DNA of 64,000 nucleotides from Nageia nagi (taxonomy: Eukaryota; Plantae; Pinophyta). Position 1 is the first letter of the stretch. Each line of letters begins with the position of its first letter. Under the pieces are notes generated by a model. That model made no database searches, was not told the origin of the DNA, and was given only the letters and a program-made list of their open reading frames with translations. The stretch covers positions 11,160,001 to 11,224,000 of the forward strand of contig JBITNC010000002.1 in assembly GCA_050084985.1 (NCBI GenBank), read 5' to 3'. Below are positions 1 through 62,960 of the stretch, in pieces. A program made the translations under genes and the position numbers.

Positions 1-770
1 TGTCTTGTTAATTGCTACAAGATAAAATATTGCATATTTGATAAGTTTAATGGGCAGATTTATGTCTCGATTGCTGGTTAAGTTGGTCATGTGTTGACAT
101 TGTTGCGACCTATGTCTCGTGTTTGATTCCCGCTATGAGACATACATGCTATGTAATAGCCTACTACAATTGTCTGTCCTATAGATCAGTTGGTCTCCAT
201 GGACATTAATATACTTTACCTTTTACCTTTACTTGTAAGTAATGAAGCAAATATTGAGATATGTGACAGGTATTTTAGAGTTTGGGGTTGAGTACTCTTT
301 ATGCCTAATTTTGGATAAATTGGATGGATGGATTCTAAGTGGGGAGATAGTTTGGATGATAAAAAATCAACTTCTGATAACTATTTATCACTTGGCTCCT
401 ACTTAATTAGTTAGAGCTCAAGGAAACAATTCGTTATGACATTATGTTCAACAAACGTAGAGTATGCGACAACTATAACAACATCAACTTAGGCCTTATG
501 GTTGAAAAAAAAAGTTATGTGACTTTGGGAGAGCACTTGACAACCAAAGTGCACTCTAGATTGCCCATAATTATATCCATCATGGTAGATCCAAGCATAT
601 TAACTTTCAATTTATTTCATAAGAGACATGATACAAAGAAATGTTGATTTGAAGTACAATATCATTAATCAACTTGTAGATGTCTTCATTAAGGGTGTGA
701 AGATAAAAAAAGTTCTTAAGGTTGAAGGTTACGTCGGTGACCTCTTTTATGATCAAAGGGGAGAATAAAG
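1..770 (+). mobile_element. Decayed Ty1/Copia pol remnant (RT C-terminus + RNase H) ending in a PPT
   Basis: Manual translation gives IATR*NIAYLISLMGRFM ... VMKQILRYV ... DSKWGDSLDDKKSTS ... SSRKQ ... STNVEY, matching the Copia motifs TRPDIAYAV/KRILRYL/DSDWAG..DDRKSTS/SKKQ..S.EAEY. Purine tract AAAGGGGAGAA at 755-765. Many stop codons. Confidence 0.85.
62..232 (+). mobile_element. Candidate tRNA-derived SINE inserted in the Copia remnant
   Basis: A-box-like TGGTTAAGTTGG (75-86), B-box-like GTTTGATTCC (121-130; CpG-decayed GTTCGATTCC), 3' hairpin 176-204 and a (TTTACC)n tail at 215-232. It interrupts the Copia frame between RFM and H.xVMKQILRY. Confidence 0.65.
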
Positions 771-1942
771 AGTTGATCACTTTAAGAGAAATTAAAGTCT
801 ATTTCATATTTAAAAAATCAATATCTCTTGAGTTTCAGACAAACCAAGATACATGTGGGAGTCACCAAAAATATCATATGTATGTATCAAAATTGTATTG
901 AGAGTAATATGATACTCCATTGAAAACTCAAATTATCATATGATCGACATTAAAAAACATAAAATTAAAAAAAATTAACTAACTTAGATATCTTAAAAAA
1001 CTTATCACCCGATCCCTTTACTCGACTTTTCCCTTGACCAAGTTTTTATGGAAAATCCCGATCACACACAAATAGTCATATGTGTCATGCGTGTGCAAGT
1101 GAACATGCACACAACTACGCTCCTAGGCTGCCTTCCTATTGTATTGTTTATCTTTTATTTTTTAAATAAAATTTATTTTAAATATAATATAATAATATTA
1201 TTTTATTTAAAATAAATAATTATTTTCGTTTTTTTGGGTAAAATAAATAATTATTTTTTATTTAAAAAAAATATATAAATTTTTTGTTATATTATATTAG
1301 ATTGTAAAATATTTACAAAAATAAATGTATTATATATTTTTCTCTCAGAATTTAAAAAATATATTTTCTTCATAAATAAATAATATAGATTTAGTTTTAA
1401 AAAATGTAAAACCCTAAAAAATATTGTTATTGTTTGGAATGCTATTTTTAATTTTAAAATAATTCAAAAATATTTTAATATGCTAATTTTTCAATTTTTT
1501 TTAATAAAATCTTACTAAAATTCAAGTTTTTTCTAAGTTAAATGGTTTGCTAAATACTCATTCAAGTCTGTTGACTATGATGTAAGATACTTTCATTTGG
1601 CTTTGATAATTTATTATTATTTTTGGTAGGTTTGCAATTCTTGTGTGAAAATTATTCATAAAATAAGTAAGTGAATAGTGAATTAACAAATTTATTATAA
1701 AGTAAAAATTGCAATATTTTCTATTGAAAGAGTTCTAAAAATGAATTGAATTGAGTTAATATTCTAGCAGATGTATAAGACAAAAATGCAGAATATGGAA
1801 ACATCATAAACCAGAACAGCCCCACCAATTACTTGCATTTATGTCGAAGTAGCAGACAAACAGATTACAAGTACAAATGGTGGAACTTTGGCAATATGCC
1901 AAGCACCCACAGAAACTAATCCTCTAGCAAATAGTTGAGTGC

Positions 1943-1985
1943 ACAATTTCAAGTACCAATTAACAATTTCAAGTACCAATTAACA
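1943..1985. repeat. Perfect 20-bp tandem duplication downstream of the Yippee stop codon
   Basis: acaatttcaagtaccaatta x2. Confidence 0.9.
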
Positions 1986-2203
1986 TTCTTTACAGTCCAT
2001 ATCATACAAAATCCCTTAACTTCGTACATTTTCACATTTAACACAATGACATCCGTCCACACAAACAAATCAGCCTACTAATTACGTCTTAAATCTCTTT
2101 GCAGAGGAAGAGCCAAGAAGCCACCCAAGTTTTTAAAATCAGAAGTTTAATGTTTCAGATGTAATGAAGTATGCTTGCAAGCTCCCACTGCTGACTATGA
2201 GTG

Positions 2204-2431
2204 CTACCAGTTTTCTTTCATTATCTTCGCTTTTTCAAGGATGAACTTGCCTTCTTTATATTTTTGGGATTCATCATAAGCTCTTTCATACTTCCAACCA
2301 AGAACTTCTCGACACTGAAAACAAGAAATATCAGCCACAGTGTGGAGGCCTGTCATAAGTTGCCTGTCTTCTTTGGGTCCTGTCAAAACATTTACAACAT
2401 GTCCAAACAAGTATGCTCTCCCGTTCCTTCC
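2204..2431 (-). CDS. YPEL: Yippee-like zinc-binding protein (Yippee/Mis18 family), exon 2 (terminal)
   Basis: [75 protein letters not shown]. Has the second CxxC and the KYKEGK motif. A polypyrimidine tract + TGCAG acceptor immediately precedes 2431 on the minus strand (phase 0). Confidence 0.96.
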
Positions 2432-2863
2432 CTGCAGATTAAAAAAAAAAAATTGTTTTAACATTAACCTTCTCACGTCTTTTCCCCATGCCGTACTAAC
2501 TCGGATAAAATCATTTCAATAAATATCAAAGAACTTGCATACGTATCTAACTGTAAGTGCTGTAACTCAGAAGTGTCATTTAGAATATCAAAAACTGTTT
2601 AAATATCAGAACAAGTTACTACCTTAATTTCGATTGAATTGTTGTTAATATACTCAGCAAAATTATGAGTGGAGAAGAATCATCTACCATAACTAGAGAT
2701 CAAATGGAAACGATGGATGAAAGCAGAAAAAATTTAAGAAAGTAAAGAGAATTTTAAAAACCATGTAGATTCGGTGATGTTGATTAACTAGTGCCATCAT
2801 CTCAGCTATAAGTTATGCATCAAATGTACATTAAAAATATCCGGTCATATCCACAGTTTAGAA

Positions 2864-5800
2864 TGTTTTTTAAGTCATTTTATTGAACACCTGTAGGAAT
2901 CTCTATTTGTATTGAGTTCATAGTTATGAGAAGATCAAATTACAAATTTATGTTTACTGTTTGGAGCATCTTAGATTCAGTAGATAGCAGTGGCAGAACT
3001 ATCCTTCGATTGTAGCAGCAAATAAGTGGCATTTATTCAGTAGAAAGTTAATATAACTTGTATATCACACTAGCTTAGTTGTAGGGAATCTAGAAAGTAT
3101 AACTTGAATGTTAAACCAAGTAGAGGTGCATAAAATAGCTGTAAAAAATTGTATTATGTTTTTAGACTACTGATGCAATTCAAATTTACATGCTGATACT
3201 TTTTTGCTCCATACTTTTATATTTTCTTTTGCCAAGTCAGAATTCGTTACTGTCTGTGATCTCTCCCCAACTATTGAAAGGTGTGCATAACTAAGTTCAT
3301 AGTTTTGTTTATACATGTTTGTGAAGTCTTGATAACTTGGCATAAATTGCTAGCAAAGATGAGTTAGAAAAAAAATGATTTAAGAGAATAACTTGCAGCT
3401 GTTCTGGGTTTGTTCAAGCTGGGAGGAAGAGCCCATTATTTGTGCTAGTGTAATGGCAAGTAACAACAGTATAATTCCAATTCTTCAATTAGAGGAGGGA
3501 AACATAGTTGGCATCTGAATGAAGGCCCTATTGCAAGGGTATGGGCTTTGGAGAATTGTAGAGAATGAGTTTACTGATGAGACCAGTTTAAATCAGCAAA
3601 ATATAAAACTTAACAAGAAGTTGGGCAAAAACAATTTGGTTCTCTTTTAGATCGATACAGCAATGGATGAGAGCATATGAGGGAATCTTGTGAATTTTCT
3701 CACTTATGACATGACTGAATAGACTTCTCAAGAAACTTGGTATCTTGATTCAGGCTGTTCCAACCATACGACCAGCAACAGGATAGCTTTGCTAATTCAG
3801 ATGAAAAATCTAAAATAGAAGCAAGTTGGAAGATGACAAGGCTGGTAAAGGATGGATGCACATCACTATGAAGCATGCTGTGAAGAAAAGTCACGATAGA
3901 TAGAATACACCTGATTTAAAATATAATCATTTTGAGTGTGGGGTAGCTATGTGAAAAGAATTACAAGGTTGATTTAGAAGATAACTGATATATAATTTAT
4001 GACAAGAGCCATGATGGTAAAGCTGTAGCTATAGTTCCAATGACAAGCAGTAGAATGTTCCTTTTGAAGCTTTATGGGTGAAAGGAGAAATCCAAGTAAT
4101 ATTTCATAGGAGGGTCCAAATTGGTTGTGGTACATGAGATATGGCCCATTTAAAGTTCGAAAATTTGAAGATGTTGAGTTCTAGATGGTTTACAGGCTGC
4201 TGGTGTGGACATAAAAATAGTGTTTGTGAAGGTTGTGCTAAAAGAAAGCAATCAAGATAGAAGTTACCCAAAGGCAAAGCATGGAGGGTTTCATACCACA
4301 ACTTTTAAATTTTAGCATATACAGAACAATGCAAACACAAAGCGTGGGTATATCTTCATATTTCATTACTTATATTAATAACCACACAAGAAAGTGTTGG
4401 ATTTACTTTTTGAAAGCCAAGGATGAGGCATTTTGATGTTCTCAAGAAGATCAAGTCCCTTGTTGACAATGAAAGTGACTATAAAACCAAGACTTTAAGA
4501 AGTGGCCGTGGAAGTGAATATTGCTCTTATGAATTCAGGGACGTTTCTGGCAAAAATAACATAAAAAGGAAACTTAATTCCTCTTGTAGAACCCATCAAA
4601 ATGGGCTGGCTAAGAGGAAAGATCATTCTATTGTAGAGATGGTGAGAAGCATGTTCGAGTGAAAGGCCTTGGCAACACGAATTGTGGAGATGTTGTTGCT
4701 ACAATAGTGTATATTTTAATTTTTGAATAGCTCAAGTACTGCTCTCATGAATATCACATTACAAGGTTTGATATGAGAGATGGCCCAATATGAGTCATCT
4801 AAAAAAAATTGGCTGTTTTATGTTGAAGACAAGAAGACAAAGAGTAAGCCATGTATATTTATTAGATATTTCAAGGAGAGATCCCAAAACACATAAGGTG
4901 ATAGTTTCAAGGGATGTATTTTTTGATGAAGAGGGTGTGTATGGACAACAAGGAGGTAAAATTGACACAATGGTCTACATTGATGATTCCAGTGAAGTAG
5001 AGGAACAACCCAGAAAAGCTAGCACTCCTTCAAGCTCACCTTTCAGTCCTTCAAGTCCATCCAACACCTCATGAAGTTTTCTTCAAGTGATGATTCTCTT
5101 GAAGCCAAGAGGGGACAAGTTCAAAAAAGAAGGGTAAGAGAATTCTTCAGTTTCGTCCTTCTATCAAATGCTAGATAAGAACTTTGAAAGAAAGCTAACA
5201 AGGACTCAACCTCAAGAGATGGATCAAATGGAGCCTAAGATGAAAAGGATTCAACTCTTCGGTGTGGATGAAGACCCTAGGCAAAATTGTTAATTATGCC
5301 TTAATGATATGAGTAGAAATAAAACCTTCCTCTTTTCATGAAGCATGTAAAAGTAATGTTTGGGTAAAGGCTATGCACGAAGGAATTGATGCAATTAAAA
5401 GAAATGAAACTTGGGAGCTTGTTAAAATTCCCAAAGAAAAGAAAGTAGGAGGATCAAAGTGGTTATACAAAACTAAATAGTGATAGAATCATTCAAAGGC
5501 GAAAGAAAAGGCCAATTGCAAAAAGGTTCACCCAAAGCCATGGCATAGATTAAGAGGAGATTTTTGCACCTGTTTTTAGGTAAGAAACAAGAAGGATGGT
5601 GGCTACATTGGCTGCCCAAATAAACTGGAAGGTAAGTCAGCTTGACGTCAAGAGTGCCTTTCTTAATAGATACTTGCAAGAAGAAATGCATGTCCAATAG
5701 CCCCAAGGTTTTGAGGTGCAAAGCAAAAGGGATCATGTATACCTGATTGCAAAAGGTCTCGTATGGCCTAAAGCAAGCTCCAAGGATATTGTATGCTAAA

Positions 5801-8740: not shown

Positions 8741-8767
8741 CAAAACATGGGTGACATAAGCCTAAGG

Positions 8768-11635
8768 AAAAGAAAGAAAGAAAGTATATTAATGTCCTCG
8801 GGTGACCAAAAGTAGTCAATGGGACTAGAAAGTACAATCATGTAAATGAAGCTAGCAAGCCCCTAGTGGGTGCCTTTAAAGAAAACATAAAAGAATAAAC
8901 AACTACAACCATACAAGAGAATCCTGGCTCTAAAAGAAAGGAGGGATACAAAAACTAAGGCTCCCCAAGGAATGTCGCTCTGGACCGCACTGGGGGAGCA
9001 TACGACGGTACTCTCTACTCCAGGGGAGCTCATGCGTGATCACTATGGGATGTGTTTGTGATATTGTTACTAGAGGAGGAGGATGTGATTTGATGCATCA
9101 GCGAAGGATCCTCGGTGCTCTGTGTACGTCTCCTGGTCCGACGTGCTAGATGCAGGTGCTCCTCTCGGTGTCTCCTACGAGCTCGCTCAAGGGAAGAGGC
9201 GCGAAAAAAGGACGTAATGAGTCGATCCCCAAGTGGTTGCTAAGCTCGAGCTAGAAGTCGTCACCGTAAGAGGAGGGCCTCTCGGAAGTACAAAGCCAAA
9301 CGGTGCTGATCAAGATAACGGATGAATGTGCTCAAAGAGCTTTGTGAGTCTCAGAAAAGGCAATAATAGCATCCTCGGATCTCATGGTAAACCAAGTATC
9401 GGAAAACAAAATGGGTCTTAGACTTAATCTCAAGAGAGCAAAGGCGACAAACTCGAAGGTCTCTTTCTATGTGGTGGTCTGTCTCGATCCTCAATTGGTG
9501 TGAACATACTCGAAATTGGCCAAGGGCTAATCTCAATCCAAGAGGAAGATGCAAGCTGATGTATCCAGGTGGTTAGATCAACCCCCTATCTAACTAGAGG
9601 AAATGATGAGCATAATGGTCTAGTTTGGGTGTCAACGGTTGCGGGGAGGACATCCAAATCTCAAAAGCATCTTGGAGACCTCGACGAACCAGCATCAATG
9701 GCAACCCTAGGCGGACAAGTCGATTGAGGAAGTCAAGGCTCTAACTACGAGTCTACCACTCCCATGGGCAGATAAATTCTGAATATGACGAAGAAAGAGG
9801 ACTATGACAGCGAGGGCCTAAACCAGAAGAGGCTTGCATCCAAACTCCGCAAGTACAATAGGGTGTGGGATTGTCCTCTTACTCCAAATGAAGCGTGATA
9901 GGAAGGTGATCAAGATCCTCTCTATCGATGTCCAATCAACTGCCAACAAGCTGGGTCCCCAAACCTTTACTTCGTACAAGGCTATAGATATGACCAGGGT
10001 CTAAAATAACTCTAACTTGGATGGAACGTCCTGAAAGTGTAACTGGAAGCACTGCCTCTCCAAAGTGGACAAGGTCACATACCCTCAACGAATTTTGGGT
10101 GCCGTTGCTGACCTCATGGAGAATCTGGGACCCGAGAAGAGCACTCCCAAGTATGTATAAGACGAGGTAGTCTCTATACTACTGCCACAAAGGCTGAGTT
10201 GTGTCCAATCCACTGTGACCTTCGAAACATTAAAGGACACAACTTTAGTCTCGCTAAGGTTCATTGTCAACTCCTGCCTAGCATTGGACCTATCAGGAGC
10301 ATCAAGAAAAGCCTGCAAACCCTCAATCGAGTGAGATAGCAATACAATGTCATCAGCAAAAAGAAGTAAGGAAACTTTGCTACCATGAAGAAGGTATCCA
10401 CACTCGGACCCTATGGTCTCAAGGATAAAGGACTCCAGCTCATCTATATATAACCCAAACAAAGTCGAAGAGAGAGCAACCCTGTTTCACCCCTATGTTG
10501 CAAAGAACACGATCAAAGAGTCCATTTGAGGTGTGCACTCAGCTTGAGAGCGTCCCATATAAAGTCAAGATAGCCACTAAACCCTCCTCTGGTACTCCTA
10601 AACTCCTCAGTTGCTTCATGAGTCTATGTCGAGGAACAATGTCAAAGGCTTTCCTGAAGTCTACAAAACAGCAAAAAACTGGAGACATCTAGAATGTAGC
10701 CTCCTCGATAATAGCCCTAAGTGTGAAAATATGATCAAAGGTATGATAGTCTTTGTGAAAGCCATCTTGTCCCATAGCTCGAAACCTCCTAGAGTCAACC
10801 ATCCAAGATAGATACCCCTCCAAGACCATGGCATACAACTTGGCCAGGGTGTGGCCAATCATGATTGTGCGATAATTGCTCGGGTCATCGGGATAGCCAG
10901 TCTTAAAGATGGGGTGAATGATGTTGGAAGTCCAGGAAGAAGGGAAACCAGAGCAAATAACATTGTTGAAGAGTTGCGCAAGGAAGGGGGGAGGGTGTGG
11001 ATGGCATGCTTGAGGAATTCGGCTTGAAGATCTTCAATGTCCATGGCCTTCCCCAAGTTTAGTTTCTAAATGGTAGAATGGATGAGGGGAGATGAGAAAA
11101 AATCTAAAGTGAAGGGAGGGTGGATAGGAGTGAGTGCGGGATGTCTACCAAAAGTGTAGAGGCAAGAGGCATACTCCTTCCAGGCATGGAAAGAAGTGGA
11201 ATTTGTGAGGTGTTTTTTAGGTAGGAAGGAGCGCCAAAAGGATTTTGCGTTAGAATGAAGGGAAGATATGATCTCGGTTCTCCTTTAGGCTAAGAAGTGA
11301 CGTTTCTTAGTCCTAAGGAGACGATGGAGCGCAACGGTGGAGGTGGATCTAGGGTCGCAAACCATGGATCGACGGAGGCGGCGATGGGAATCTTTGCACT
11401 CAAGTTCAAACCAAGGATTCATCGAACAATGGCCTGGGTGGCGAAAGCGGTGGGGTGGGCTCAGTTTGTGGGGAAAGGCCTGGAGGGCCGCTTAGTGGAG
11501 GAAAGTAGCAAGAAAGGAGGAGGCTCGATCCTCTACCGACGGGAGGGAGGGTAAAGCGAGGAGTTTTTGCTAAAGGAGCTATTGTAGAGTGGGTCAAATA
11601 GGATGGATAGGCGAGGGGCTCTGGGAGTGGGAGTG
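8768..11635 (-). mobile_element. 5'-truncated, frameshifted LINE (RTE-X-like) with intact 3' end and (CTTT)n tail
   Basis: RT motifs CFVDFRKAFD, GVKQGC, LFGLYIDELE, LLLFADDIVLL and YTYLGV. C-terminal FRVCSHQLRIET..RVCRLC..HFVF..Y..IR Cys/His domain. GC-rich relative to flanks. 3' end GGACATTAATATAC(TTTC)n at 8768-8797. The clade assignment is an inference. Confidence 0.85.
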
Positions 11636-16282: not shown

Positions 16283-16778
16283 TGTAACGCTACCAGACGC
16301 GCCACCCCTTGGGGCGTGGCTATCGATGGTAACGCCCGGCACCGACATAGTCGACACGGTCCGAAAGCCTGGGTACCGGACTTATGGGAATCACCCCCAC
16401 CAGACGTATCCTCTCATGGCCCTTCCCGCACGGCTAGCCGGCTCCACCGTCTTCGTCAACTCCGTAGTTGCATACTGCTCGAGGCCTCGTACCTCTAGAG
16501 CTAGTCCGACCCCTTGGAGCATCGGACCGGTTTGTCATAGTTACCAGGATGCCTGTGCTCACCGCCCAACCAACGACCTTCAAACGGGTATCACCCCTAA
16601 GGTCCCCCTGAGCTGTATTCGCCCATCCATATCGCCCAGTCCAACCATAGGAACGGACTCTCAACCTTGTCCGCCATGGTTCCTAAAGCATGACAGTCTG
16701 GGCCCGGAATGGATCCCCGTGTACTAGAGGTTACGCTCTACGTACACTCACCACCCCGGGAGAGGCGACCCTCTCACA
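16283..16778 (-). repeat. 3' LTR of the Galadriel-type element
   Basis: 496 bp; ~24 substitutions + 1 indel versus 22385-22881 by manual comparison (~95% identity). Confidence 0.96.
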
Positions 16779-17394
16779 TTCTCCCCCACTTAAAGATGTT
16801 GATGTCCTCGTCAACAATGTACCCCGAAGGGACGAGTGGGTCTCTGGCAACAAATTGGTGCTAGTCACGCCACCAATATTTTTCATGGCCTTCAGCCAGG
16901 AACTCTTGGATCTTGTCCTCAAAGTTCCATAAGCTTTCTGCCCTTTCCCATGTGTCATTTTCGATGGTTTCACCTTCCCATCCGACAAGGTACTCAATTT
17001 TCTTTATCTTACCAAAACCCCTTGTCCTGACACCCTTGATCTCTTTTACTACCTTCTACGGTCTATCGATGATACCGACAGGCGGGCGAGTGGGAACCAT
17101 TCTCTCAGGATTTTCTGAATCTTCCACACATGGCCTCAACTGGCTGACATGAAAAACATCATGTATGTGCAGATGACTTGGTAGCTAGATCTTATACGCC
17201 ACTTTGCCAATTCGCTTAACCACTCTGAATGGTCCCTCATATCTCCTCGTGAGAGACTTTGATGTTCCCGGTGCAAGCTTGAAGTGGTCTCCATCAATTC
17301 TCAACAATACCAAGTCCCCAACCTTGAACTCCAACTCTCGTCTCCTCTGATTTGCATTTTTCCGCATTCTCTCCTGAGCCTGTAGTAGAAATGC

Positions 17395-18882
17395 TCATGC
17401 AGCATCTATTCTCTCCTTCCAATCCTCCAAGTACCAAGTTGCCGATGGGCAAGTGCTATAATATTCCGATACCACTGTGTGGGGAGCGATTGGTTGCCTA
17501 CCCGTGGCAAGTTCGAATGGAGTGAATTTACTTGAGGCTGACTTCTGGCTATTATAACTGAACTGTGCAATGTCCAGGAGGTCGGGCCAGTTTGTTTGGT
17601 CTGATATCACATAATGCCTCAAGTATTCCTCTAGGATCCCATTTACTCTCTCTATCTGCCCATCTGTCTGTGGATGGTGACTTGTGGACAGAAACAGCTT
17701 TATGCCCATTATCCTGAATAACGTTGACCAAAAGTTACTAGTGAATCGAGCATCCCTATCCGACACAATGTTCAGTGGTATCCCCCAATATTTCACAACA
17801 TGCTTGAAGAAGTATTCAGCTGTCATTGCCGCTTCGCATGGATACCTACACAGGATGAATGTGGCATACTTAGAGAATCTATCAACCACTACCATAATGC
17901 TGGTATATCCTTGTACCTCCGGTAAGCTGGTGATAAAGTCCATGCTGACACTCACCCATGGTCCGACAGGTATTGGGAAAGGTTGAAGTAAACCTGCTGG
18001 CCGTTTTCTCTCACTCTTATCTTGTTGGCACAATAGGCAGCTTCTCACATAGCTTTCCACATCCTTGAACATGTTCGGCCAATAGTACCCTCTAGAGATC
18101 AACGCCATCATCCTATCTCTTCCTGGGTGTTCGGCCCAAGGTGAGTCATGACACTCTTTCATTATCTCTGTTCTTAGGCCGTCCCACTTCGGCAAATAGA
18201 TCCTGTTGGCACTGTACATCAGTAAGCCCATACGAGTCTTGAACCTTGTCAACCGATTCACATTTGCAAATTTATCTACTGAGGTTACCATGGCTCTAGC
18301 CTGCGGGTCTTTTTCCATCCCTTCTCTGATTCTCGAAACCAAATCCCCTGAAAGCTATACTTGACCTGGCTGATTTGGCTGTTGATCCTCTTTGGCCAAC
18401 TCTTCCTGGCCATTTTTCATTGCAGTGAGGGCACGGGGTGGTTTCTCCCCCACTTGAGCTTGGGCGAGCTCCTGCGAGCCCTCATTAGGATCCTTCAGTT
18501 GAGCCTTATGGCTCAAGGCATCCGCTACCGCATTCTTCTTGCCTAGGTTGTATCTAAACTCGGCATCATATCCGACCAAGAAGTCTGCCCACCGTGCCTT
18601 CTTCCCCGTTAGCTTACTAGATGTCTTAAAATAAGTGTTGGAGATGTTGTCCATCTTAATCACAAATGGAGTGCCCAAAAGATAGTGTCTCCAAACACGT
18701 AAACAGTGTAAGACTGCCACCATTTCCTTGTCATGCGCGGGGTAGTTCCTCTCCGCGTCTTTCAACTTTTGTGACTCATAAGCTATGGGGTGTCCATCTT
18801 GGATCAAGACCCCACCGATGGCATAATCCGAAGCATCTGTGTGCACTTCAAAAGACTTAGAAAAGTTAGGCAAAGCTAACAC
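17395..18882 (-). pseudogene. pol: Gypsy pol fragments: RNase H (18355-18882) and integrase (17395-18342)
   Basis: TDASDYAIGGVL, ADALS; HDSPWAEHPG..CLLCQ, SMDFIT, VVDRFSK, SDRDARFTS, HPQTDGQIERVN. Confidence 0.95.
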
Positions 18883-18924
18883 TGGTGAGGTTGTGAGCTT
18901 GCATTTCAGTTCCTCAAATGCCTT

Positions 18925-20547
18925 CTATCGAATTGGAGTCCAGAACCACCTTGTCTGTTTTCTGAGCAACTGAGTGAGGGGGGCTGCTATCTTCGAATAT
19001 CCACATACAAACTTCCTATAATAGTTGGCTAAACCCAAAAATTGTCTGAGCTGATGGACATCCTTTGGAGGCTCCCAATCTTGAATGGCATCCAACTTCT
19101 GCATCTCTGGCTTAATCTTTCCACCACCAACGACATGTCCCAGGAAGCTCACTTCTGTTTGTGCAAAGGCACATTTTTCGTTTTTGACGTAAAGCTCGTT
19201 CTCCCTGAGCTTGTCAAACACCAAGGCCAGATGTGTTTTGTGCTCCTCTAGGGACTTGCTATAAACCAATATGTCATCCAGATATACCACGATGAACTTA
19301 TCCAAATAAGGCCGGAACACATCGTTCATAAGCGTACAAAATGTCGTCGGGGCATTGCATAACCCGAATGGCATAACCATAAAGTCGAAAGAGCCATATC
19401 TTGTCACACAGGTTGTTTTCTCTTCATCGCCCTGTGCGATGCGTACTTGGTAATAGCCTTGCTTTAAATCAAGCTTCAAGAAGTACACGGCTTTACCCAA
19501 CCGATCAAAACAATCCTCAATGAGTGGAAGTGGGTACTTGTTTTTGATCGTAATTTTGTTAAGGGCCCGGTAGTCCACACACATCCGCAACGACCTGTCT
19601 TTCTTTTTCTGAAATAGCACTGGTGCCCCGTAAGGTGAATGAGACGGTCTCAAATAACCGGTGGCCATTAACTCTTCTAGCTGCTTCTTTAACTCTGCCA
19701 TTTCTGCCACTGATAGTTTGTACGGCCTGATAGCTGGTGGTTTAGCCCCCGGAGTCAACTCTATCTTAAGATCAACCGTCCTCCTCAGTGGGAGTCGAGT
19801 TGGTAACTCCACCGGCATCACATCTCCATATCTCTCTAGCACTTCGTTGATCTCTCCGGGGACTGCTGTCTTCTCCACTTCCTGATCCTCCCAACCTCCC
19901 AACATGGCTGCTAGAAAAAGAGGTTCCCGTTTATTCCTAGAGGCTTTTCTAATGGACATGGCAGAGAGGTTTTGGAGGCGACCACTAGACCTAGGCTCAA
20001 TAAGGTCAACCATGCACGAGTAGTCGGGATGCATAATGACCAACTTCCCGATGTGGGGCATGGTCGCGGCATGGGTAGTATAGATGAAGGATTGACCTAG
20101 GACCAGGTCGAAGTTGAGACTAGGCACCACAAAGAGGATTGTGGTACCAAGCCACTTCCCTACTTGGAGAGACACTTTGGGAGTCTGGCGCAAACTGATT
20201 TCCTCTGGCCGGTTGGCAACTTGCAGGGATTCGTTGGACTTGTGTGTTTTAAGGCCCAAATCCTTACAAAGGCGTTCAAATATATAATTGCTCGATGCAC
20301 CCCCATCAATGAGAGCCACGACGGGTCTCCCATTAAGAGTGACATCCACATAACTGAGAGGATAGTGTTGGCTCTCATCAATATGAGTTGGCTTACCCTC
20401 AATGGCTGCCAAAGCGTTCAAGAGTCGAACACCAAGGGCACTTTGAGAGTTCGATGACGTTGAGGCAGTCATTGTTAGAGCCAACGGTTGGGGAGGATGA
20501 GTCACATAGTATTGGACTGGTTGAGCTTGGGGAGTGGCCAGGTTCAT
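18925..20547 (-). pseudogene. pol: Gypsy pol fragment: aspartic protease + reverse transcriptase
   Basis: 540-aa ORF with LIDGGASSNYI, RMCVDYRALN, MPFGLCNAP, VYLDDILVYS and FLGHVV. Confidence 0.95.
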
Positions 20548-20559
20548 GACATTTAGGTG

Positions 20560-21663
20560 ATTTTGGTGAGGGCATTCTTTAGCAATATGACCGGTGCTAT
20601 CACACCTGAAGCATCACCGTTTGCCTTGCTGCTCATACTCAAACCGTTGCACCTTCTATAACCGATTACTGTCCTCACCATGGTGCCCTCTTTTGCCCTT
20701 TTTATTCTTGCCATGCTTGCCCTCTCCTTTCCCAAACTTTTCCTGCTTTCCCCTGTTATCTCTGTTGTCCCGACTGTCACCTGTCCAACCCTTCTTGCTT
20801 TTTCGCTTATCTCCCCAACTTTTCTTTTCTGAACTCGCCCCTCTTTTGTCGTCCTTTTTCACCCTAGCCTCTCTATAGTCGGTCAACTTTTCAGCCACTT
20901 GTATGGATTCCACGAGCTTGCTTATCTGCTACCGATTAAGCTCAGCCTTGGCCCAAGGTTGGAGGCCCTTCATAAAGTAATGCAGTTTAACATGCTCTTG
21001 CAAGCCTGACGTTGCCAATATGTAAACTTGGAAGGCCTTGATATAATCTTTTATGGTGCCTGTATGCTGGAGGGCATCCAGCTTTTCCAAGATCTTTATA
21101 TCTGCGTTGATGGGTTTGAATTGATCTCTCAAGAGCTATTGGAAATTTTCCCAAGTCTTGCAAGGATCTTCCCCCGTTAACAAAGCTGACCGAGTTCTCC
21201 ACCAAAGTTTGGCACCACCTTCCAGCAGACCTACTGCAATGTTGATCTTTTTTCGATCATCAACCCGAGGAAGCTGACTGAAATTGTGTCCCAAATCTCA
21301 AATCCATGTTTCCAATACCATGGCTTCCCGTTCTCCACTGTACGAGGCTAGCATTTTCACCTTAATCTGTGCCTCGACTTTGTCCTGGCCTGTTGAGCCA
21401 GCTACAAGTTGTGTCAAGAGGGTCATTTTTTCATTCATCTCGTGAATGACCCATCTATACTCACCCACTTGAGTCTCCAGGTCAAAAACACGATTGCCCA
21501 GATCGATGGTCTCGCCTCGCATGACCTCGTGCTCCTCAGTAAGGGCAGCATTTTCTGCCTGAAGTTGCACGATCATGTCACCATCCCCCACTCTCTCACC
21601 GCAGGGTTTCCTTTTATTCTGGTCCCTCAGTTCCTTGAACTGTTCCAAATACTTATCCACCAT
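20560..21663 (-). pseudogene. gag: Gypsy gag remnant (Retrotrans_gag + zinc knuckle)
   Basis: KVKMLASYSGEREAMVLETWI, LQHTGTIKDYIKAF..FMKGLQPWAK and a CCHC knuckle; split by stops. Confidence 0.85.
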
Positions 21664-22384
21664 TATCTAATGTATGACCCGATAAGGAGTTTCCTCCTCT
21701 TCATTTTGAACAGTCGGTTCCTACGGTACTGTTCCCTGAGGCATCTCTTCTAACTCTATCTCTTCCACTGGTTGAGCAGACATCTTGAACCACCCAACAC
21801 GATCACTAGCACAATTCGACACAGGTACACACACACGGACACACTTTACCAAACTTCACGCTTCAAACCTACAACATGAGACATGTAGGTTAGAATACCA
21901 CACAAGGCGCCACGAATTGCTAAGGCAAACAAGGTTGTGCATGAGCAGAAATAAACACACAGCACGAAGCATGCACAAACACACCGTAAGCATCACATCA
22001 CATTTTTCCCGACCCGACTAGACCCTCTATAGTTTCACACGGACCGGGGGGACATGATAAGAAACCATGCTTTGCCTTTCATTTAGCAATTCTATTATGC
22101 CGTCGACATGGCATACGGGATCCCACTCCTTCTGTAAGGAGTTTCTTGGTGCTGCCTCCTTCGATGCATCGGCACCTTGGTAAGGTGTTGCCTCCTTCGG
22201 TGCATCGGCACCTCTGCACGCTTAGCAATTAAGCACTCGTGCATACCCACATGCCTTAGTCAACCAAGGTTCAGGTGAGTAACCAATTCCCCGTGACATC
22301 ATGCTTCACATGGGTCGAATCAGCACGATGCCCATGGTACATGGCACCTTCCTTACATGAACCCTTCAAGGCTTTGATACCACG

Positions 22385-22881
22385 TGTAATGCTACCAGAC
22401 GCGCCACCCCTTGGGGCATGGCTATCGATGGTAACGCCCGGCACCGACATAGTCGACACGATCTGAAAGCCTGGGTACCGGACTTATGGGAATCACCCTT
22501 GCCAGACGTATCCTCTCATGGCCCGTCCCGCACGGCTAACCAGCTTCGCCGTCTCCGTCAATTCCATAATTGCATACTGCTCGAGGCCTCGTACCTCTAG
22601 AGCTGGTTCGACCCCTTGGAGCATCGGACCGATTTTTCATAGTTACCAGGATGCCTGGTGCTCACCGCCCAACCAACGACCTTCAAACGGGTATCACCCC
22701 TAAGGTCCCCCTGAGCTGTATTCACCCATCCATGTCGCCCAGTCCAACCATAGGAACGGACTCTCAACCTTGTCCGCCATGGTTCCTAAAGCACGACAGT
22801 CTGGGCCCGGAATGGATCCCCGTGTACTAGAGGTTACACTCTACGTACACTCACCACCCCGGGAGAGGCGACCCTCTCACA
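22385..22881 (-). repeat. 5' LTR of the Galadriel-type element
   Basis: 497 bp; followed on the minus strand by a tRNA-Met PBS. Confidence 0.96.
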
Positions 22882-42286: not shown

Positions 42287-44279
42287 TGCTACTGGAAGAA
42301 GGTAATGCATGAGAACTAAATCCATCAGACCAAGGATCTTAAGTTTTTCCATAGAGATATTTTTGCTAATATTTGAACTAAATCCATTAGATACTTTCAC
42401 ATTGTAAACTAGTTGGAAAACTCTTTATCTATCAATATTGATTAATTGTAGGGTGTTACTAGAAGATATATCTTAATTTCTTCAATTACTAACCATGATA
42501 GTTTCTTGATCTTCATATTTCTTAAATCCTCATAGATTTTTGTGTCATCCTTTGACTTTCCTTCGATACTTAAAAATATCCTAAATAGGTTTTTGCAAAT
42601 ATTTTTCTCCATGTGCATAATATATAAGTTATGATGAAATAAAATATGTTATTCATAGATAGAAACATCAAACTAAAATTTAGGTCATTGATAATAATAA
42701 TAATAAATTAATATAAAAATAAAATTACATATCATACCTCCTAATAGGATAGATTGCAGAATATATATTTCTTCTTCCATCCTTTAGTGTCATCACCATA
42801 TTTACATTTTTTTTAACTCACTCTTTCAATTTTAGTGGGATTTTTTAACTTTTTACAGTATTTGCTTTCTACTTAAATGGATTGGTGCTTTGTCCCACTC
42901 TTCTTGGTTATTGAAAGATTCCTTTTTATGATCAAATATATAATATTTAGGAAGGAATCTCCTATGGCCCATATAAATGATCTTATTACTACCACTAAGT
43001 TGTTGTGAATAGGTGTTCCCCTCGTATTTTACACATGTTAAAAATCCCTTTATCATCCATCTTGATAGGTTTCCATAAGAAGGATAATCATGAATGACCC
43101 ATATCAATATTGCTCTCATATTGAACGTAGTATTATGAAATGCATCATAAATTTGTACTCCTTTATTCCATAGTTTATGCAAGTCATCAACTAAATATAA
43201 CAAGCTAAGCATTGAATAATTCCTCTTCATATACATCCATGGTAAAAGGCTGTATATGACCAACACAATGGGCCAACAAATATAATAAGAACTAAAATCG
43301 TCAAAAACATTGAACCCATTAATTGTCATTATCAACTATACATTGTGTGGATCTTCAACAAAATATAGCCACATAGCATCTATCTTTTTCCATGTTAGAG
43401 AGTCAATTGGATGATATATATTGGCTTCTAAACTATTATGCTAGGAATGCCACCTCATATGCTCTGCAAGCTTTACAAAGCTACAAGAAGAAAGTAACTC
43501 ACTTTAACCATATCTAACAATGTTGAAAGAAACAAACACAACAAAGCTATTGGTATGATAAATATCTTAGTTATACATTCTCTTCAACCATGGTATAATG
43601 GGAAAATACTTCAATACCTTTGTAGGAACCTTATTCTTTTGTTTGTTTTCAAATGAGGATCAAATTTCCATCAAGATGCACTACATTTTGGATACATTGC
43701 CTATTTTTATGATCTTTCTAAGATAAAATATAGTCATTTGGACATGCATGTATCATTATATAATATAATCCCAATAGATTTAAAAATTTATTCATCACAT
43801 ATGGTGAATTTATAATTGTATTATTGATTACAAGGAGCATATCTTTCAACAACTTGAATAGCTACAACCAAGCTACAAATTAAAAATCATTAATAGGAGA
43901 TTAGAACTTGACATCATTATCTCGTAGTTCTTTTCTACTCTTTGAGTAATTGATATTAATGATTGTAATAATATCATCTTGTATGCTTTTGATATTTGTA
44001 TATTCATTCATATTGATGGATGCATCCAATTCATATTGGTCAAAAGTAGTTTGTTTTTCTCCATGCAAAAAAAAATCATCATGTATTTTCATACCCATTT
44101 AAAAATAGGTGCTTATAAACCTCCTCAAAATTGAGAGTTTTCGTATTTTAGTACCACCACTATTGATATATAATTATTTTAAGGTACTTTGAATTATTTC
44201 TTGCAAAATCAATGAATTCATTAACCCCATGAACATAATCATTAGTATTTCTAAGTGTTTGTAGCCAATCTTTATCCAT
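42287..44279 (-). pseudogene. CACTA/En-Spm TnpD transposase, N-terminal part (Transpos_assoc + Transposase_21), decayed
   Basis: ATG at 44279 gives MDKDWLQTLRNTNDYVHGVNEFIDFA; IHACPND; ORF 42853-43335 has WPIVLVIYSLLPW..DDLHKLW..IHDYPSYGNLS..YMGHRRFLP; IMHMEKNICK. Confidence 0.9.
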
Positions 44280-44789: not shown

Positions 44790-46960
44790 AGGCCCTGGCG
44801 GTCCTGATGGAGGCGATGTATCTGATGAGGATGATAGCAACAAAGTGAATCTTGAAAAAAGAAAGAAGAGAAAATAAGATGAGCATGACAAAGCCTCGAA
44901 GAAGTAGCTCGCTCATGTGAACCTACATTAGTAACCCCAACAAGTTAACGATGGAACTTGGTTGGAAGGAGTGGATTTGAACGCCTATCTCAAGAGCTTA
45001 CAAGATATGACCAGAAGTGACTATGGTAGTGTTGATGCTGATAATGATGATGATGATGATGACACTCTTGCAAGAACCCCTAAAATCCTTCAAAGTTTCC
45101 CCAGTATCAGATTCGATAAGAGGATTTCAATGAAAAAACTCCACAACAATAAAAAGGGCCCAAAGATGTAGCTACCCTCAAATCCATGCTAAAAAATATG
45201 ATATTGAAAAGATCAATGAGGATGGAACAATGTGTATAGGGAAGTATATTATGGACCACATGCAAAAGTTAGTGAAAAAACATGAGAAAAATGTTAAGGA
45301 TTTAGAAGGAAAGATCCAGAAAGAGAGGGCAAGAACCTTTAATTGTTGATGAGAATGCTCTAAAAGTCAATTTTCATAAGGCAGACACATTTGCTAAAAG
45401 GGCTCAATCTCTCATCACCCAACTACTTAGTACCTTGGACAATTCCTATGACATGTTCACTTGGTTTTTGTTCATTAGAAAAGAATTGAAATATATAGAG
45501 AGAACTATAGCCGCCATGAAGGATGTATGGTAAGCTAACATTCAATTTATTTTCAGCTCAAAGAAGAAATAGGGGTAAAAAACTATCTTTTGAATGAGAA
45601 TATGTGATAAATTCTTTTTCTATCATGGATATTTCCTAAAAAATCAAGAGAAATGCAAGGAGATGCTGGTCAAGTTCAAAGCAATATATGAGAAGTTAAA
45701 GGCTATCTTGCAGACCGTAAGCATTCAACTTTTTGATGAAGTTACACTTATATAAAAGACACAATTGCAAGCTAGTTTCAAAGAGATGATGAAGTCTCAA
45801 TTATTAACCAAAAAAATTAAATCCATTCAAGTTCAAAGTCTACTATGATCATATGATGTGTTGGTAATTTTTTAGTTGAGATTACAGGAATTGATGGATG
45901 AAATCAGGAGGCTAGATGATGAAACAATTATGGATGCTAGCAACCTAAAGTAGCATATTGGGAAGTTGACCAAGTTCGTAGGAAAAGACCTTCAAAACAA
46001 GTTGGCAAATTCATTAAAGAGTAACTAAAGTTCTACCCCCATATCACCCCTTGGATAAGGTCAATTTGTAATTTGAGAATGATAATGTTCAATTTTTGGA
46101 TGGTAATGTTCCACCACTCGGATATGGTAATTGGAGGAATTAGACTTAATAAAAGTCTTATTACATATTTTAATTGGAAGTAAAACATGTTGATGGTCTT
46201 ATCCACATATCACCCATTGGATAGGGTTTTATTTTGACAAAATGGAAAGAGGAAAACATTTTGTTGGGCTTATTTAAAGTCCCATTCTACACTTTCACCT
46301 AAGGACACATGGCATTACCAACATATAGGGACATGTGAAGCAAGTAACATAAGAAGATACATAGTGAGTCAAGAGAATTTAGGATATATTAGTTTTTATT
46401 TAGTTGTCACTTTTTGATTAGCTAAGCAATTTGAAGAGTCTCTTGAAGTTGAGGAGCCATTTTTGTAGCTAAAGTAGATAGATGAATAGTCAAGTTTTTC
46501 CGCTCCCTTATCTTTTATAAAAGGCAGGTTAGTGAATTGTAAAAATTCTCTCTCATATTTGCAAGAAATTGTTGTATTTTTGAAGATTGAAGATTAATAA
46601 AGAAGACTTGATTGCTCTTATGTTATCATTCTACTATTATTATTTTCATGTGTGAATGCTTTGTTTACAAACTAATTAGTAAACTTGTGTTGCATATGAT
46701 TTTGATAACCTTTCATGTGTTTTGCAAGTGTTGCAACATGACTTATGATTGAAAGTGAAGACTAATACAAGTGAATTAGTATTGATTTTTAGTTAGGCTA
46801 ATATGATAAAGACTTTCACTCTAATTATTGAGCAAAGATCTAGGGACGTCCTTACTATTTTAATCTCAAACAAGCTTTGCAGTTGGAATTATCATAAGTT
46901 ATTTTCTCCTACCAGGTTATCAGTAAGAAGAATAAATTTTTCAATTGGAAACTCCTGCAA
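44790..46960 (+). mobile_element. Retrotransposon remnant: decayed acidic/coiled-coil accessory ORF (~44800-46030) followed by LTR-like sequence
   Basis: Interrupted K/E/D-rich frame (e.g. 44962-45171), then non-coding sequence with TATAAAAG at 46516 and LTR-like U5 composition. Boundaries uncertain. Confidence 0.4.
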
Positions 46961-56140: not shown

Positions 56141-59100
56141 GGAGAAGAAACAAGGATGGATGGAGGACCTAAATGATTTTCTACCAAAGAAGGAGGAGGA
56201 CAAGTCATGTGCGGATTTGGGCTTGCCAAGAAGTCGAGACAAGCGCAAGAGGAGTAGTAGAAGGGATGTAGAGTCTAGTCATTGGAGCATGGGATATAGA
56301 GGTAAAACAATGGCCAAGGAGGACTTTAGAAAATATTTGGAATACATTCTATTGAGGTTGCCAATGGAGGTTAAGGTGAAAGGCAAATAAAAAAATTGAA
56401 ATCTGGAAAGGCTCTACTGCTAAGGGAGATAGGCTCCCTTCGTGGAATGTTGTTATCGAGGTTGAGGAACATCATAGCTAAAGTGGACAAGCTCTAGGAG
56501 TTGGTTTGTGAGGATATGGAACTATAGCAAGTTTTGGAATGTTGATGCATGGATTGATAATGGAAAGATCATGTATTGGGTGATAATTTTGGTGCTTGTG
56601 TAAGACTACATGTAGTAGTATGGATGTTGATGGGCATATTAATATGTAATAGGGTATTATGTTAGGAATATGGTTGTTTTTCTCTATGTTGTATTGAAAA
56701 TCAAGGCAAATATGGATGTAACATGGTTATTGGTTCCCTCTAAAAACCACCTATTAATATACATATAAAAAACTAGAGGCTAGTTATGCATGGAAAAATA
56801 TCTCCTAAATAAGCTAATTATTAATTATAGATATTATTATTTTTAACCTATGCTCACTATTAATTCCACTTTAGTTACACAATTATCTTATAGCTAATTT
56901 TATATGAGATTAATTACACTTAAATAAATCATTATTGTTTTTTGATAATTTATCATTATTAAAATCTAATAATGAAAATAACAACATTGCTTGGGTATTT
57001 AAATAAATTAATGCCTAATAATGATTTTTAGATAGTATATCATTATTATTATATAGTAATAACAATGATAATTTTACATAAGTATTAAATAGTAAAAATT
57101 AATCAATTACTTAATATTTAATAGCTAATAAGTATACACCTTAATTTGCCTAGTTAGTAATTATTTTAAATGTCACCCTACCATACTAACATCAATTGTT
57201 AGGGGTTTCCTGACATATTTTTATTTTACTAACATCTTGGGAAAAATCATAAAGTTTACATAAACATATTAATATCAAGAAGATAACACACCAAGAAAGA
57301 CACCATTTTATAATTCTAAGAGGCTCCCATTGAAGTGGTTATCCTTGCCTTATGCAACTACATGTAGGTTATCTTACTATGGGTGTTGTCTTGAGTATTC
57401 ATTTAGATTTAATGGTCTTTGAATCGCTACCAGTTTGTCTGACCCATCCATTCATTAGCATCTTGCATTCATGTACATGTTCCTGCACATTACAATAAGT
57501 GTCTTGATAGTAACATGTATTATAATAATAATATTGTAGGATTAGTTTTCAATGCTCCTATCTTGAATATTCATAACATCATAAATAAATGCACACTGAA
57601 CTGCATCATTACTAATCATAAGCACAAGTGTCTAGTCTCACACACCAAAGCATCAACGAAAACATAACAAAGAAATCCATGGTGAGTTTGGGTTGTGACA
57701 CAGCCATAACAAAAAGCAAAGGAGAACATATCCAATAATGGAAAAGATCACATACTTGTTAAAGAGGATGAACAAGATAACAATAATAGGGAGAGGGTTA
57801 CCATAAAAGGGTAGATAATAACCATGACTTGGTAACCATAGCAGAATAAAGGTCCAAAGAAAATGACAAGTCTTCCCCTATGGAGCAAATTGTAGAAAGT
57901 GAGGATCTTTGGAAAGAAGATGAACAACCACATGACTCGAGGACACAAATGTAGGAAAGAAAAAATTAAAAGAATGAAGGGTAGAAACAAGTCAAATCTA
58001 AAAAGAGATAAGTTTCACAATAGAATACGTGCTCAAAAATTAAACCAGACTCTAAAGAATTAATAGTGAAAGAAACACAACTCCTCAAAAGTGATTTTCG
58101 GATAACACAAAGTGCATCAAAGAAGACAATCATAGGATAAAGACATGTTGGATGCCCGAATGAAGGAGAAATTAGAGAGAAATAAACTTCCAAGGAGGTT
58201 GCAGATGAAAATTAATCAACATTAGATGGTTTTGAGATAGGAATTCTCCTTAAACCAAGAAAGAAATGAGATACCCATAGAATATTGTTGATCTAGATGC
58301 TACAGTTTTGGTAGAAGACTCATTAAAGACGGGAGAGCTCTCCAATAAATTGAAATATGTAAGAAATTGATGTCCAACATGTTTTATGGGACACCATGCA
58401 ACATTTAGAAAGAACATCTTAATATTGTAAAATAAACAATGGTAGCATGTTGCCAAAGTTGTTGCAAATTTGTAATAACAAGTTTAGGTACTATATAAAA
58501 ACCCCTTTAAATTTAACCAATGACCATTATTTTGGTCTCCGCAAAAAAATAAAAAAAATAAAAAATATTTCTCAAATAATTAAGTTTTACAATAAAATCA
58601 AGTTTGTTTTGGTTTTCTTGGTTTAAGATTTCATGGATCAAGCTATAATTACAAATATGTTTGTAGGTTTGTATAATATAATTTGTAGGTGGGAAAAAAT
58701 AGAAAATGAGTCTTATCCTCTATGGCTTTTAAGTTACAAAACTTACAAATCATTTTATCCCACTGTGATTTAGGTATTGTCCATCTACCAATTTCACTAT
58801 GTAGTTTGTATGAATTAGTTTACGATTACATGTGCATGTTTGAAAATATTATAATTATTAAATAAATATTGAGATTTTTATTTATTAAAATGTAATTTTT
58901 ATGAATCTCAATGTTGATTCTTTCTATTATTTTTATAGTTTTATTTTTTGAATGTTTATAGAATGTTATGTTGGATTTGATATCAATCTTTGCAAATGAG
59001 AGATTTACTTCGATGGGTATGATTCCTCAATGGTAGTGAAACCTCATCAACAATATAAAAATATTGTAAAACCTTTGATAAAAAGGAATTATTACATAAC

Positions 59101-62099: not shown

Positions 62100-62960
62100 G
62101 ATATAACTTCTCAGTACCAACATGAATTAATGTCTTTACTTGCAAGCTACATTGAGGATTTGAGTGCTAGGATAGGGTATATCTTTGATTCAGAAAATGT
62201 TGAAATCATGTGATGAATCTAGTTCAAAAGCTTGATATTATGGAATAACACTAGAGCCAACATGGGGTATGTGTCAAATTCATCCAAAATGATGGAATGA
62301 GGGATATCTCTTTTGGCTTGAATGGAACTTGAGAGCAAGTTGACCAAAATCCTCTTGATGCAGGCCCAACTCCCCCAAACTTCACATCCATAAAGCAAGG
62401 CCAAAGAGACAAGAGCATGGAAACTATTAATTTTTGCCATGATATTATGGAATTGGAGTTGAACACATTCTCTACCGAGTGTGACAAATATAACATAGAT
62501 TATTTTAAGATGTTGGGATCAAGCTAAAAGTACGACCTATGAAGAGCACACCCAAATAGGTATAAGAGGGCATTGTCTTGATAAGTTGCCTTTGGAAAGT
62601 TAGTTGAATTTTGGAAGCATATACTCTTAACATATTGAAGGACATCACCTTCGTAGTACAAAAGGTACTTAGTGTATCAAAGTAACGTTGAAGCTTATTT
62701 TTTGTATGATATAGCTAAATGACATCTACAAAGAGTGAAATTGAGCCAATGGAACCATCCAAAAAATAACCCACAATTGGTTCCAGGGTGTTTAACATTA
62801 GTTGTCTAAGATCATTAGTATAGAACCCAAATAGAGGAGGTGAGAGGGGGTAACCTTGTTTGACACCAATAATGTTATAGAGCATATTGGATAAGTGAGA
62901 ACTAACTCGAACTTGGCTAACTACCTATTAATATAATGTCATGACAAGGGATATGACATT
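62100..62960 (-). mobile_element. Older, AT-rich fragment of an RTE-X-like LINE RT
   Basis: GVKQGYPLSPPLFGFYTNDL (62810-62870); ALVSLALLYGCEVWG..KRIL..AKRDIPHSIILDEF, homologous to LYEVKVWG..ERIL..SKRTIPHPIVLAEFG in the 8768-11635 copy. Confidence 0.75.

Follow-up and report, generated by a model that had tools for sequence, protein, structure and literature searches.

In the eel, the LINE UnaL2 and its partner UnaSINE1 possess the same conserved 3′ stem-loop followed by a short terminal repeat, and both features are required for reverse transcription, a mode described as 'stringent' recognition. UnaL2 belongs to the vertebrate L2 clade of LINEs, and the recognition of its 3′ end has been demonstrated experimentally. 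This eel pair supplies the mechanistic model applied here, whereas the pair described below is known from sequence alone.

Among plants, the Au-like SINEs and the tobacco TS SINE share with the RTE-clade LINEs RTE-1_STu/SolRTE-I both their 3′ end and a hairpin that shows covariation (Nishiyama & Ohshima 2018, PMC6007223), and three plant SINE/LINE pairs were counted before Au-like SINEs with RTE were added (PMC6007223). RTEs went undetected in the non-angiosperm land plants Physcomitrella, Selaginella, and Norway spruce, and algal RTEs form a separate clade of their own (PMC5850137). RTE-X LINEs occur in Chlorella (PMC11005252).

The 64-kb stretch of DNA analysed here (the window) carries at its left edge a noncoding SINE candidate of ~175 bases (~61-235, plus strand) and, at a distance of ~8.5 kb, a decayed LINE on the minus strand (8764-11539). 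The two compare with the Au-like and TS systems in several respects. The SINEs of those systems have a head of the tRNA-promoter type that contains box A and box B, comparable to the box-like motifs of the candidate; their partner LINEs end in a microsatellite-like repeat and not in poly(A), as the window LINE does; and their short 3′ hairpin is kept by compensatory changes, with terminal repeats that may differ between SINE and LINE, as they do here. The Au-like and TS SINEs, however, share ~75 nt with their LINEs, exist in many copies, and show target-site duplications and an insertion signature, whereas here 42–45 nt are shared by one copy with no duplication. Furthermore, their partner LINEs are RTE-clade members, whereas the nearest full-length relatives of the window LINE are algal. 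The stretch at ~61-235(+) is probably one old copy of a Pol III-type SINE, the last 42 nt of which derive from the LINE family at 8764-11539(−) and which was mobilised in trans by the LINE reverse transcriptase (RT).

The 3′ module of the SINE candidate (176-217, plus strand) reads GTCC-TAT-AGATCA-GT-TGGTCT-CCAT-GGACATTAATATACTTT and is followed by ACCTTTTACCTTTACTTG, and that of the LINE (8825-8781, minus strand) reads GTCC-CAT-TGACTA-CTTT-TGGTCA-CCCGA-GGACATTAATATACTTT and is followed by CTTTCTTTCTTTTCCTT. A sequence check confirmed both ends as quoted in the initial annotation, together with the 17-bp exact match that it had noticed between SINE and LINE. This 17-mer, GGACATTAATATACTTT, occurs at exactly two sites in the 64 kb, 201-217(+) and 8781-8797(−), and the window contains no further site when up to three mismatches are allowed; the base composition of the window predicts 5e-5 exact chance copies over both strands. 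In the candidate, the lower stem of the module pairs GTCC (176-179) with GGAC (201-204) and the upper stem pairs AGATC (183-187) with GGTCT (192-196), both on the plus strand. On the minus strand, the LINE module pairs GTCC (8825-8822) with GGAC (8797-8794) and, in its upper stem, TGACTA (8818-8813) with TGGTCA (8808-8803). RNAfold returned the same two-stem hairpin for the SINE, the window LINE, and two LINE tails found on metagenome contigs (L004 and L005), with modest z-scores of −1.2 to −2.4.

Only the three LINE tails (the window's, L004, and L005) went into a covariance model with the two-stem structure, the SINE being left out. This model matches the full length of 176-217 with a score of 40.3 bits (E 2.8e-7) and all 10 base pairs kept, and the next match in the window reaches 15 bits only. 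The two-stem hairpin that had been proposed as common to the SINE and LINE tails is thus upheld by both RNAfold and the covariance model. Counting pairs over the four sequences gave standard pairs in 40 of 40 cells, with one compensatory and three one-sided, wobble-compatible changes, and sliding the 3′ partners by one to three columns either way lowered pairing to 23%–50%. The compensatory change affects the basal pair of the upper stem (pair 8/23), which is UA in the three LINEs and AU in the SINE, and corresponds to the A-T/T-A swap described initially. Covariation in the hairpin, to which the initial annotation had looked for further support, is suggestive but not significant with four sequences only, as 131 of 500 shuffles reach the observed values.

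The SINE and LINE tails are identical at 34–35 of 45 positions overall, at 17–18 of 28 in the hairpin part, and at 17 of 17 in the end, and the three LINE tails are identical to each other at 24–25 of the 28 hairpin positions. Among the LINE copies, 41–42 of the 45 module positions are identical, compared with 57%–80% in the ~85 nt just before it, and this better conservation points to selection on the module. The end repeats differ, being TTTACC-like in the SINE and CTTT in all three LINE copies. Upstream of GTCC, local alignment of the candidate against the three LINE 3′UTRs was no better than shuffles (P 0.3–0.97); homology upstream of the hairpin had appeared in a misleading MAFFT alignment and was ruled out by the shuffle test. 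SINE-LINE homology is hence confined to the last 42–45 nt and ends exactly at the hairpin base, as expected if the recognition module alone was borrowed. Within these limits, the 3′ ends of the SINE candidate and the LINE are homologous.

The head of the candidate (61-144, plus strand) contains an A-box-like motif, TGGTTAAGTTGG (75-86, plus strand), identified by pattern match, and a B-box-like motif, TGTTTGATTCC (120-130, plus strand), with two mismatches to GGTTCGANNCC, one of which is a C-to-T change at a CG. The fold closes the head with a 9-bp stem on the plus strand (61-69 with 136-144; z = −1.65, not significant). The A-box-like motif lies 14 nt after position 61, the start of this stem, as in tRNA-type SINEs. 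The two motifs start 45 nt apart (75 and 120), which is the tRNA-type spacing, and lie on the correct strand 50–100 nt upstream of the module. Across the window, the combined A+B pattern occurs twice (75/120 and 22335) against 1.02 expected, and in shuffled sequence about once per 128 kb. Because the window-wide count matches chance, the motif pair supports a SINE head via its position only; from the shuffle rate, we estimate the chance of such a pattern in this ~100-nt slot at ~1e-3. As regards the description of the element as a 'tRNA-derived SINE', the A/B-box-like motifs at tRNA spacing and the run of four T residues are present, but no tRNA was recognised in the head by ARAGORN, even with thresholds relaxed to 75%, or by Rfam at E ≤ 10. 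Rfam likewise had no match in the window as a whole. The minimum-energy fold of the head is a rod and not a cloverleaf. The 9-mer TATGTCTCG is present twice in the head (61-69 and 111-119), 50 nt apart, and TGAGACATA at 136-144 is able to pair with either of them, a repetition that suggests internal duplication or alternative folds.

Between head and module lies the body or linker of the candidate (145-175, plus strand), which has no significant similarity to the LINE 3′UTR. Beyond the module is the T-rich end ACCTTTTACCTTTACTTG (218-235, plus strand), the 3′ boundary of which is not fixed. The tail given as '(TTTACC)n' in the initial annotation is indeed a TTTACC-like repeat, but comprises only ~2.3 imperfect TTTACC(T) units. 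A TTTT run (220-223, plus strand) just after the 3′ module is a possible Pol III stop. At its other end, the candidate starts ~60 nt inside the window edge, with its 5′ boundary undefined. No target-site duplication better than chance was found around it: the flanks match best as TTGATAAGTTTAATG against TTGTAAGTAATG, with a score no higher than that of equally arranged random sites (P = 0.41). With flank similarity at the level of chance, the insertion ends of the candidate are undefined.

Elsewhere in the 64-kb window there is no second copy of the head, and scans of viral, metagenome, and prokaryote contigs yielded none. In the viral contigs, the 17-mer and two patterns taken from the head gave chance matches only, and the scans of prokaryote genome contigs gave nothing or chance matches. 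The metagenome scan used the pattern GTCC-N18-28-17mer and returned two true LINE tails (L004 and L005), one chance match (L003), and zero SINE. The open frame of the candidate (51-206) was translated and sought as spurious ORFs from other copies, of which there were none, and a search for related loci with the LINE RT found none.

The partner LINE proved to be a genuine non-LTR element, as initially annotated: it encodes an RT and, at the C terminus, a Cys/His motif of the CCHC type, and it ends in a (CTTT)n tail. Its decayed coding region (9294-11539, minus strand) corresponds in tblastn to residues ~320-1117 of relatives of 1130–1200 aa. The RT (~10088-11033, minus strand) is detected as Pfam RVT_1 in two pieces, and the C-terminal Cys/His motif (9354-9572, minus strand) aligns with the C terminus of a Coleochaete protein. 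The end of the ORF and the 3′UTR together make up ~480 nt (8826-9293, minus strand) that are 82% identical to L005, and the microsatellite-like (CTTT)n tail (8764-8780, minus strand), read from the sequence, is the same in L004 and L005. The copy in the window is without the endonuclease part and has several frameshifts and stops.

A profile search against 1.84 billion representatives found the closest full-length relatives in Chlorella vulgaris and Coleochaete scutata, in addition to unnamed metagenome/Logan proteins. The Chlorella and Coleochaete relatives are 1130–1350 aa long; those of Chlorella are automatically named 'LINE-1 ORF2' and those of Coleochaete are transcripts. In a Pfam scan of eight relatives, five possess both Exo_endo_phos and RVT_1, and RVT_1 only was found in the three best-scoring full-length relatives, namely the highest-ranking unnamed protein and the two from Chlorella. 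The Coleochaete protein is among the relatives in which an APE-type endonuclease was recognised. A Ginkgo gene model contains an RT stretch 39% identical to that of the window, with an RT profile match of E 3e-44. A relative of the LINE showed the same weak similarity (E ~1e-22) to the solved reverse transcriptases of R2 and of L1, which indicates that the window LINE is not an ordinary L1. The initial label of 'RTE-X-like' is plausible, given the RTE-X LINEs reported from Chlorella and the separate clade of algal RTEs: in common with RTE-X and algal RTE-like LINEs, the element has a microsatellite tail, and its Cys/His motif aligns with the Coleochaete relative, whereas the window copy differs in being without the endonuclease part.

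Of the two metagenome contigs, L005 shares 82% identity with the window LINE across 1.2 kb, and on L004 there is a fragment of this LINE's tail (520-652) that matches the window copy over ~133 bp; short tail-only copies of this LINE thus exist. The L004 contig also carries Ty3/gypsy RNase H and integrase ORFs (1762-3162). The window itself contains a second, distant non-LTR RT relic (62177-62960, minus strand), which is 25%–30% identical to the same relatives, as well as a separate C-terminal Cys-motif fragment (58697-58819, minus strand), downstream of which there is no hairpin/17-mer tail.

Elements of other classes are also present in the window. A Ty3/gypsy LTR retrotransposon spans 16283-22881, with LTRs at 16283-16778 and 22385-22881 that are 93%–98% identical; its protease-RT, RNase H, and integrase ORFs lie on the minus strand and are largely open, and no named plant protein exceeds ~65% identity to the gypsy pol ORF. 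A covariance-model match within this element (16792-16833, minus strand; GTCCCTT...CGAGGACATCAACATCTTT; 15 bits, E 0.19) is located 3′ of the gypsy pol stop, beside the polypurine tract, and was judged to be due to chance. A further match, at 46279-46307, is without the end motif and was discarded. An ORF at 42853-43335 (minus strand) has a strong match to Transposase_21 (tnp2, CACTA-type DNA transposon).

Three other explanations for the candidate have to be weighed against its origin as a SINE. Were the two tails to resemble each other by chance, with no common origin, the AT-richness of the motif could be cited in favour and nothing more, and the module would have come by accident to be placed alike relative to the T-rich end in both elements. 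This explanation is effectively refuted by the exact 17-mer pair, by the expectation of 5e-5 copies, and by the covariance-model match (E 2.8e-7), in which every pair is kept. It is also improbable that the candidate is merely the 3′ part of some longer non-autonomous element, whether derived from a LINE by deletion or formed as a chimeric retrocopy through template switching, that runs off the start of the window, in which case the head would be no Pol III promoter. A start ~60 nt from the window edge with an undefined 5′ boundary would suit such an element, as would the unsupported tRNA-likeness of the head; however, the 9-bp stem from 61 and the A-box-like motif 14 nt on are arranged as in tRNA-type SINEs, and positions 1-60 bear no resemblance to the LINE.

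It is somewhat unlikely, yet a serious possibility, that 61-235 consists of unrelated DNA with chance A/B-box-like strings, followed by a ~45–60-nt 5′-truncated copy belonging to another tail subfamily of the same LINE. Truncation at the 5′ end is usual for LINEs, with the tail fragment on L004 measuring ~133 bp, and LINE upper stems do vary (GACT versus GATC). Patterns like the A and B boxes are frequent in AT-rich DNA, and the SINE candidate is without a tRNA match, a target-site duplication, or a second copy of the head. Such a copy would, however, have to be truncated precisely at the hairpin base. Its hairpin would match those of the LINE tails at 17–18 of 28 positions, although the LINE tails match mutually at 24–25 of 28, and its end carries a repeat other than (CTTT)n. 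Moreover, the A/B pattern is in the right place, with the right spacing and on the right strand, for which the chance is estimated at ~1e-3.

For the preferred reading, that of an old Pol III-type SINE copy with a LINE-derived tail, a mechanism can be proposed that is modelled on the 'stringent' LINE/SINE pairs. Pol III would start just upstream of the A-box-like motif, at a distance of a few bases, pass the B-box-like motif and the module, and stop at TTTT (220-223). On the resulting SINE RNA, the LINE reverse transcriptase would recognise the two-stem hairpin and the invariant end GGACAUUAAUAUACUUU, as it would on its own RNA, and the enzyme would then use target-primed reverse transcription to insert a copy of the SINE at a nicked target. 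From the layout of the element and its shared tail, we infer Pol III transcription, a tRNA origin, mobilisation in trans, and the existence of a family of copies, each of which should be read as a prediction. A head that is never joined, genome-wide, to the GTCC...GGACATTAATATAC module (where GGACATTAATATAC is the end string of the module) would refute this reading.

The sharing of tails by SINEs and LINEs is not in principle new, since plant pairs have already been published, and the initial annotation's suggestion that such a pair might be undescribed in gymnosperms is weaker than stated, in that pairs of a plant SINE and an RTE that share a covarying 3′ hairpin are on record (PMC6007223). 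Searches of the literature, which were unspecific, found no SINE/LINE pair from a gymnosperm or a fern. Novelty could possibly reside in the host lineage and the LINE clade. More tentatively, this might be the first SINE/LINE pair outside the flowering plants, run by an ancient green-lineage clade of algal-type, RTE-X-like LINEs that has persisted in a land plant and with the two-stem hairpin and invariant 17-nt end as its signal.

The finding leaves the understanding of SINE mobilisation unchanged. Should a genome-wide census confirm it, one more SINE/LINE pair would be added to the few known in plants, and the annotation of repeats would benefit in a plant genome that is large and poorly annotated. 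If true, it would also provide a defined 45-nt recognition module that is open to dissection by retrotransposition assay, and the pair may sit in a plant lineage and a LINE clade for which no case has been described.
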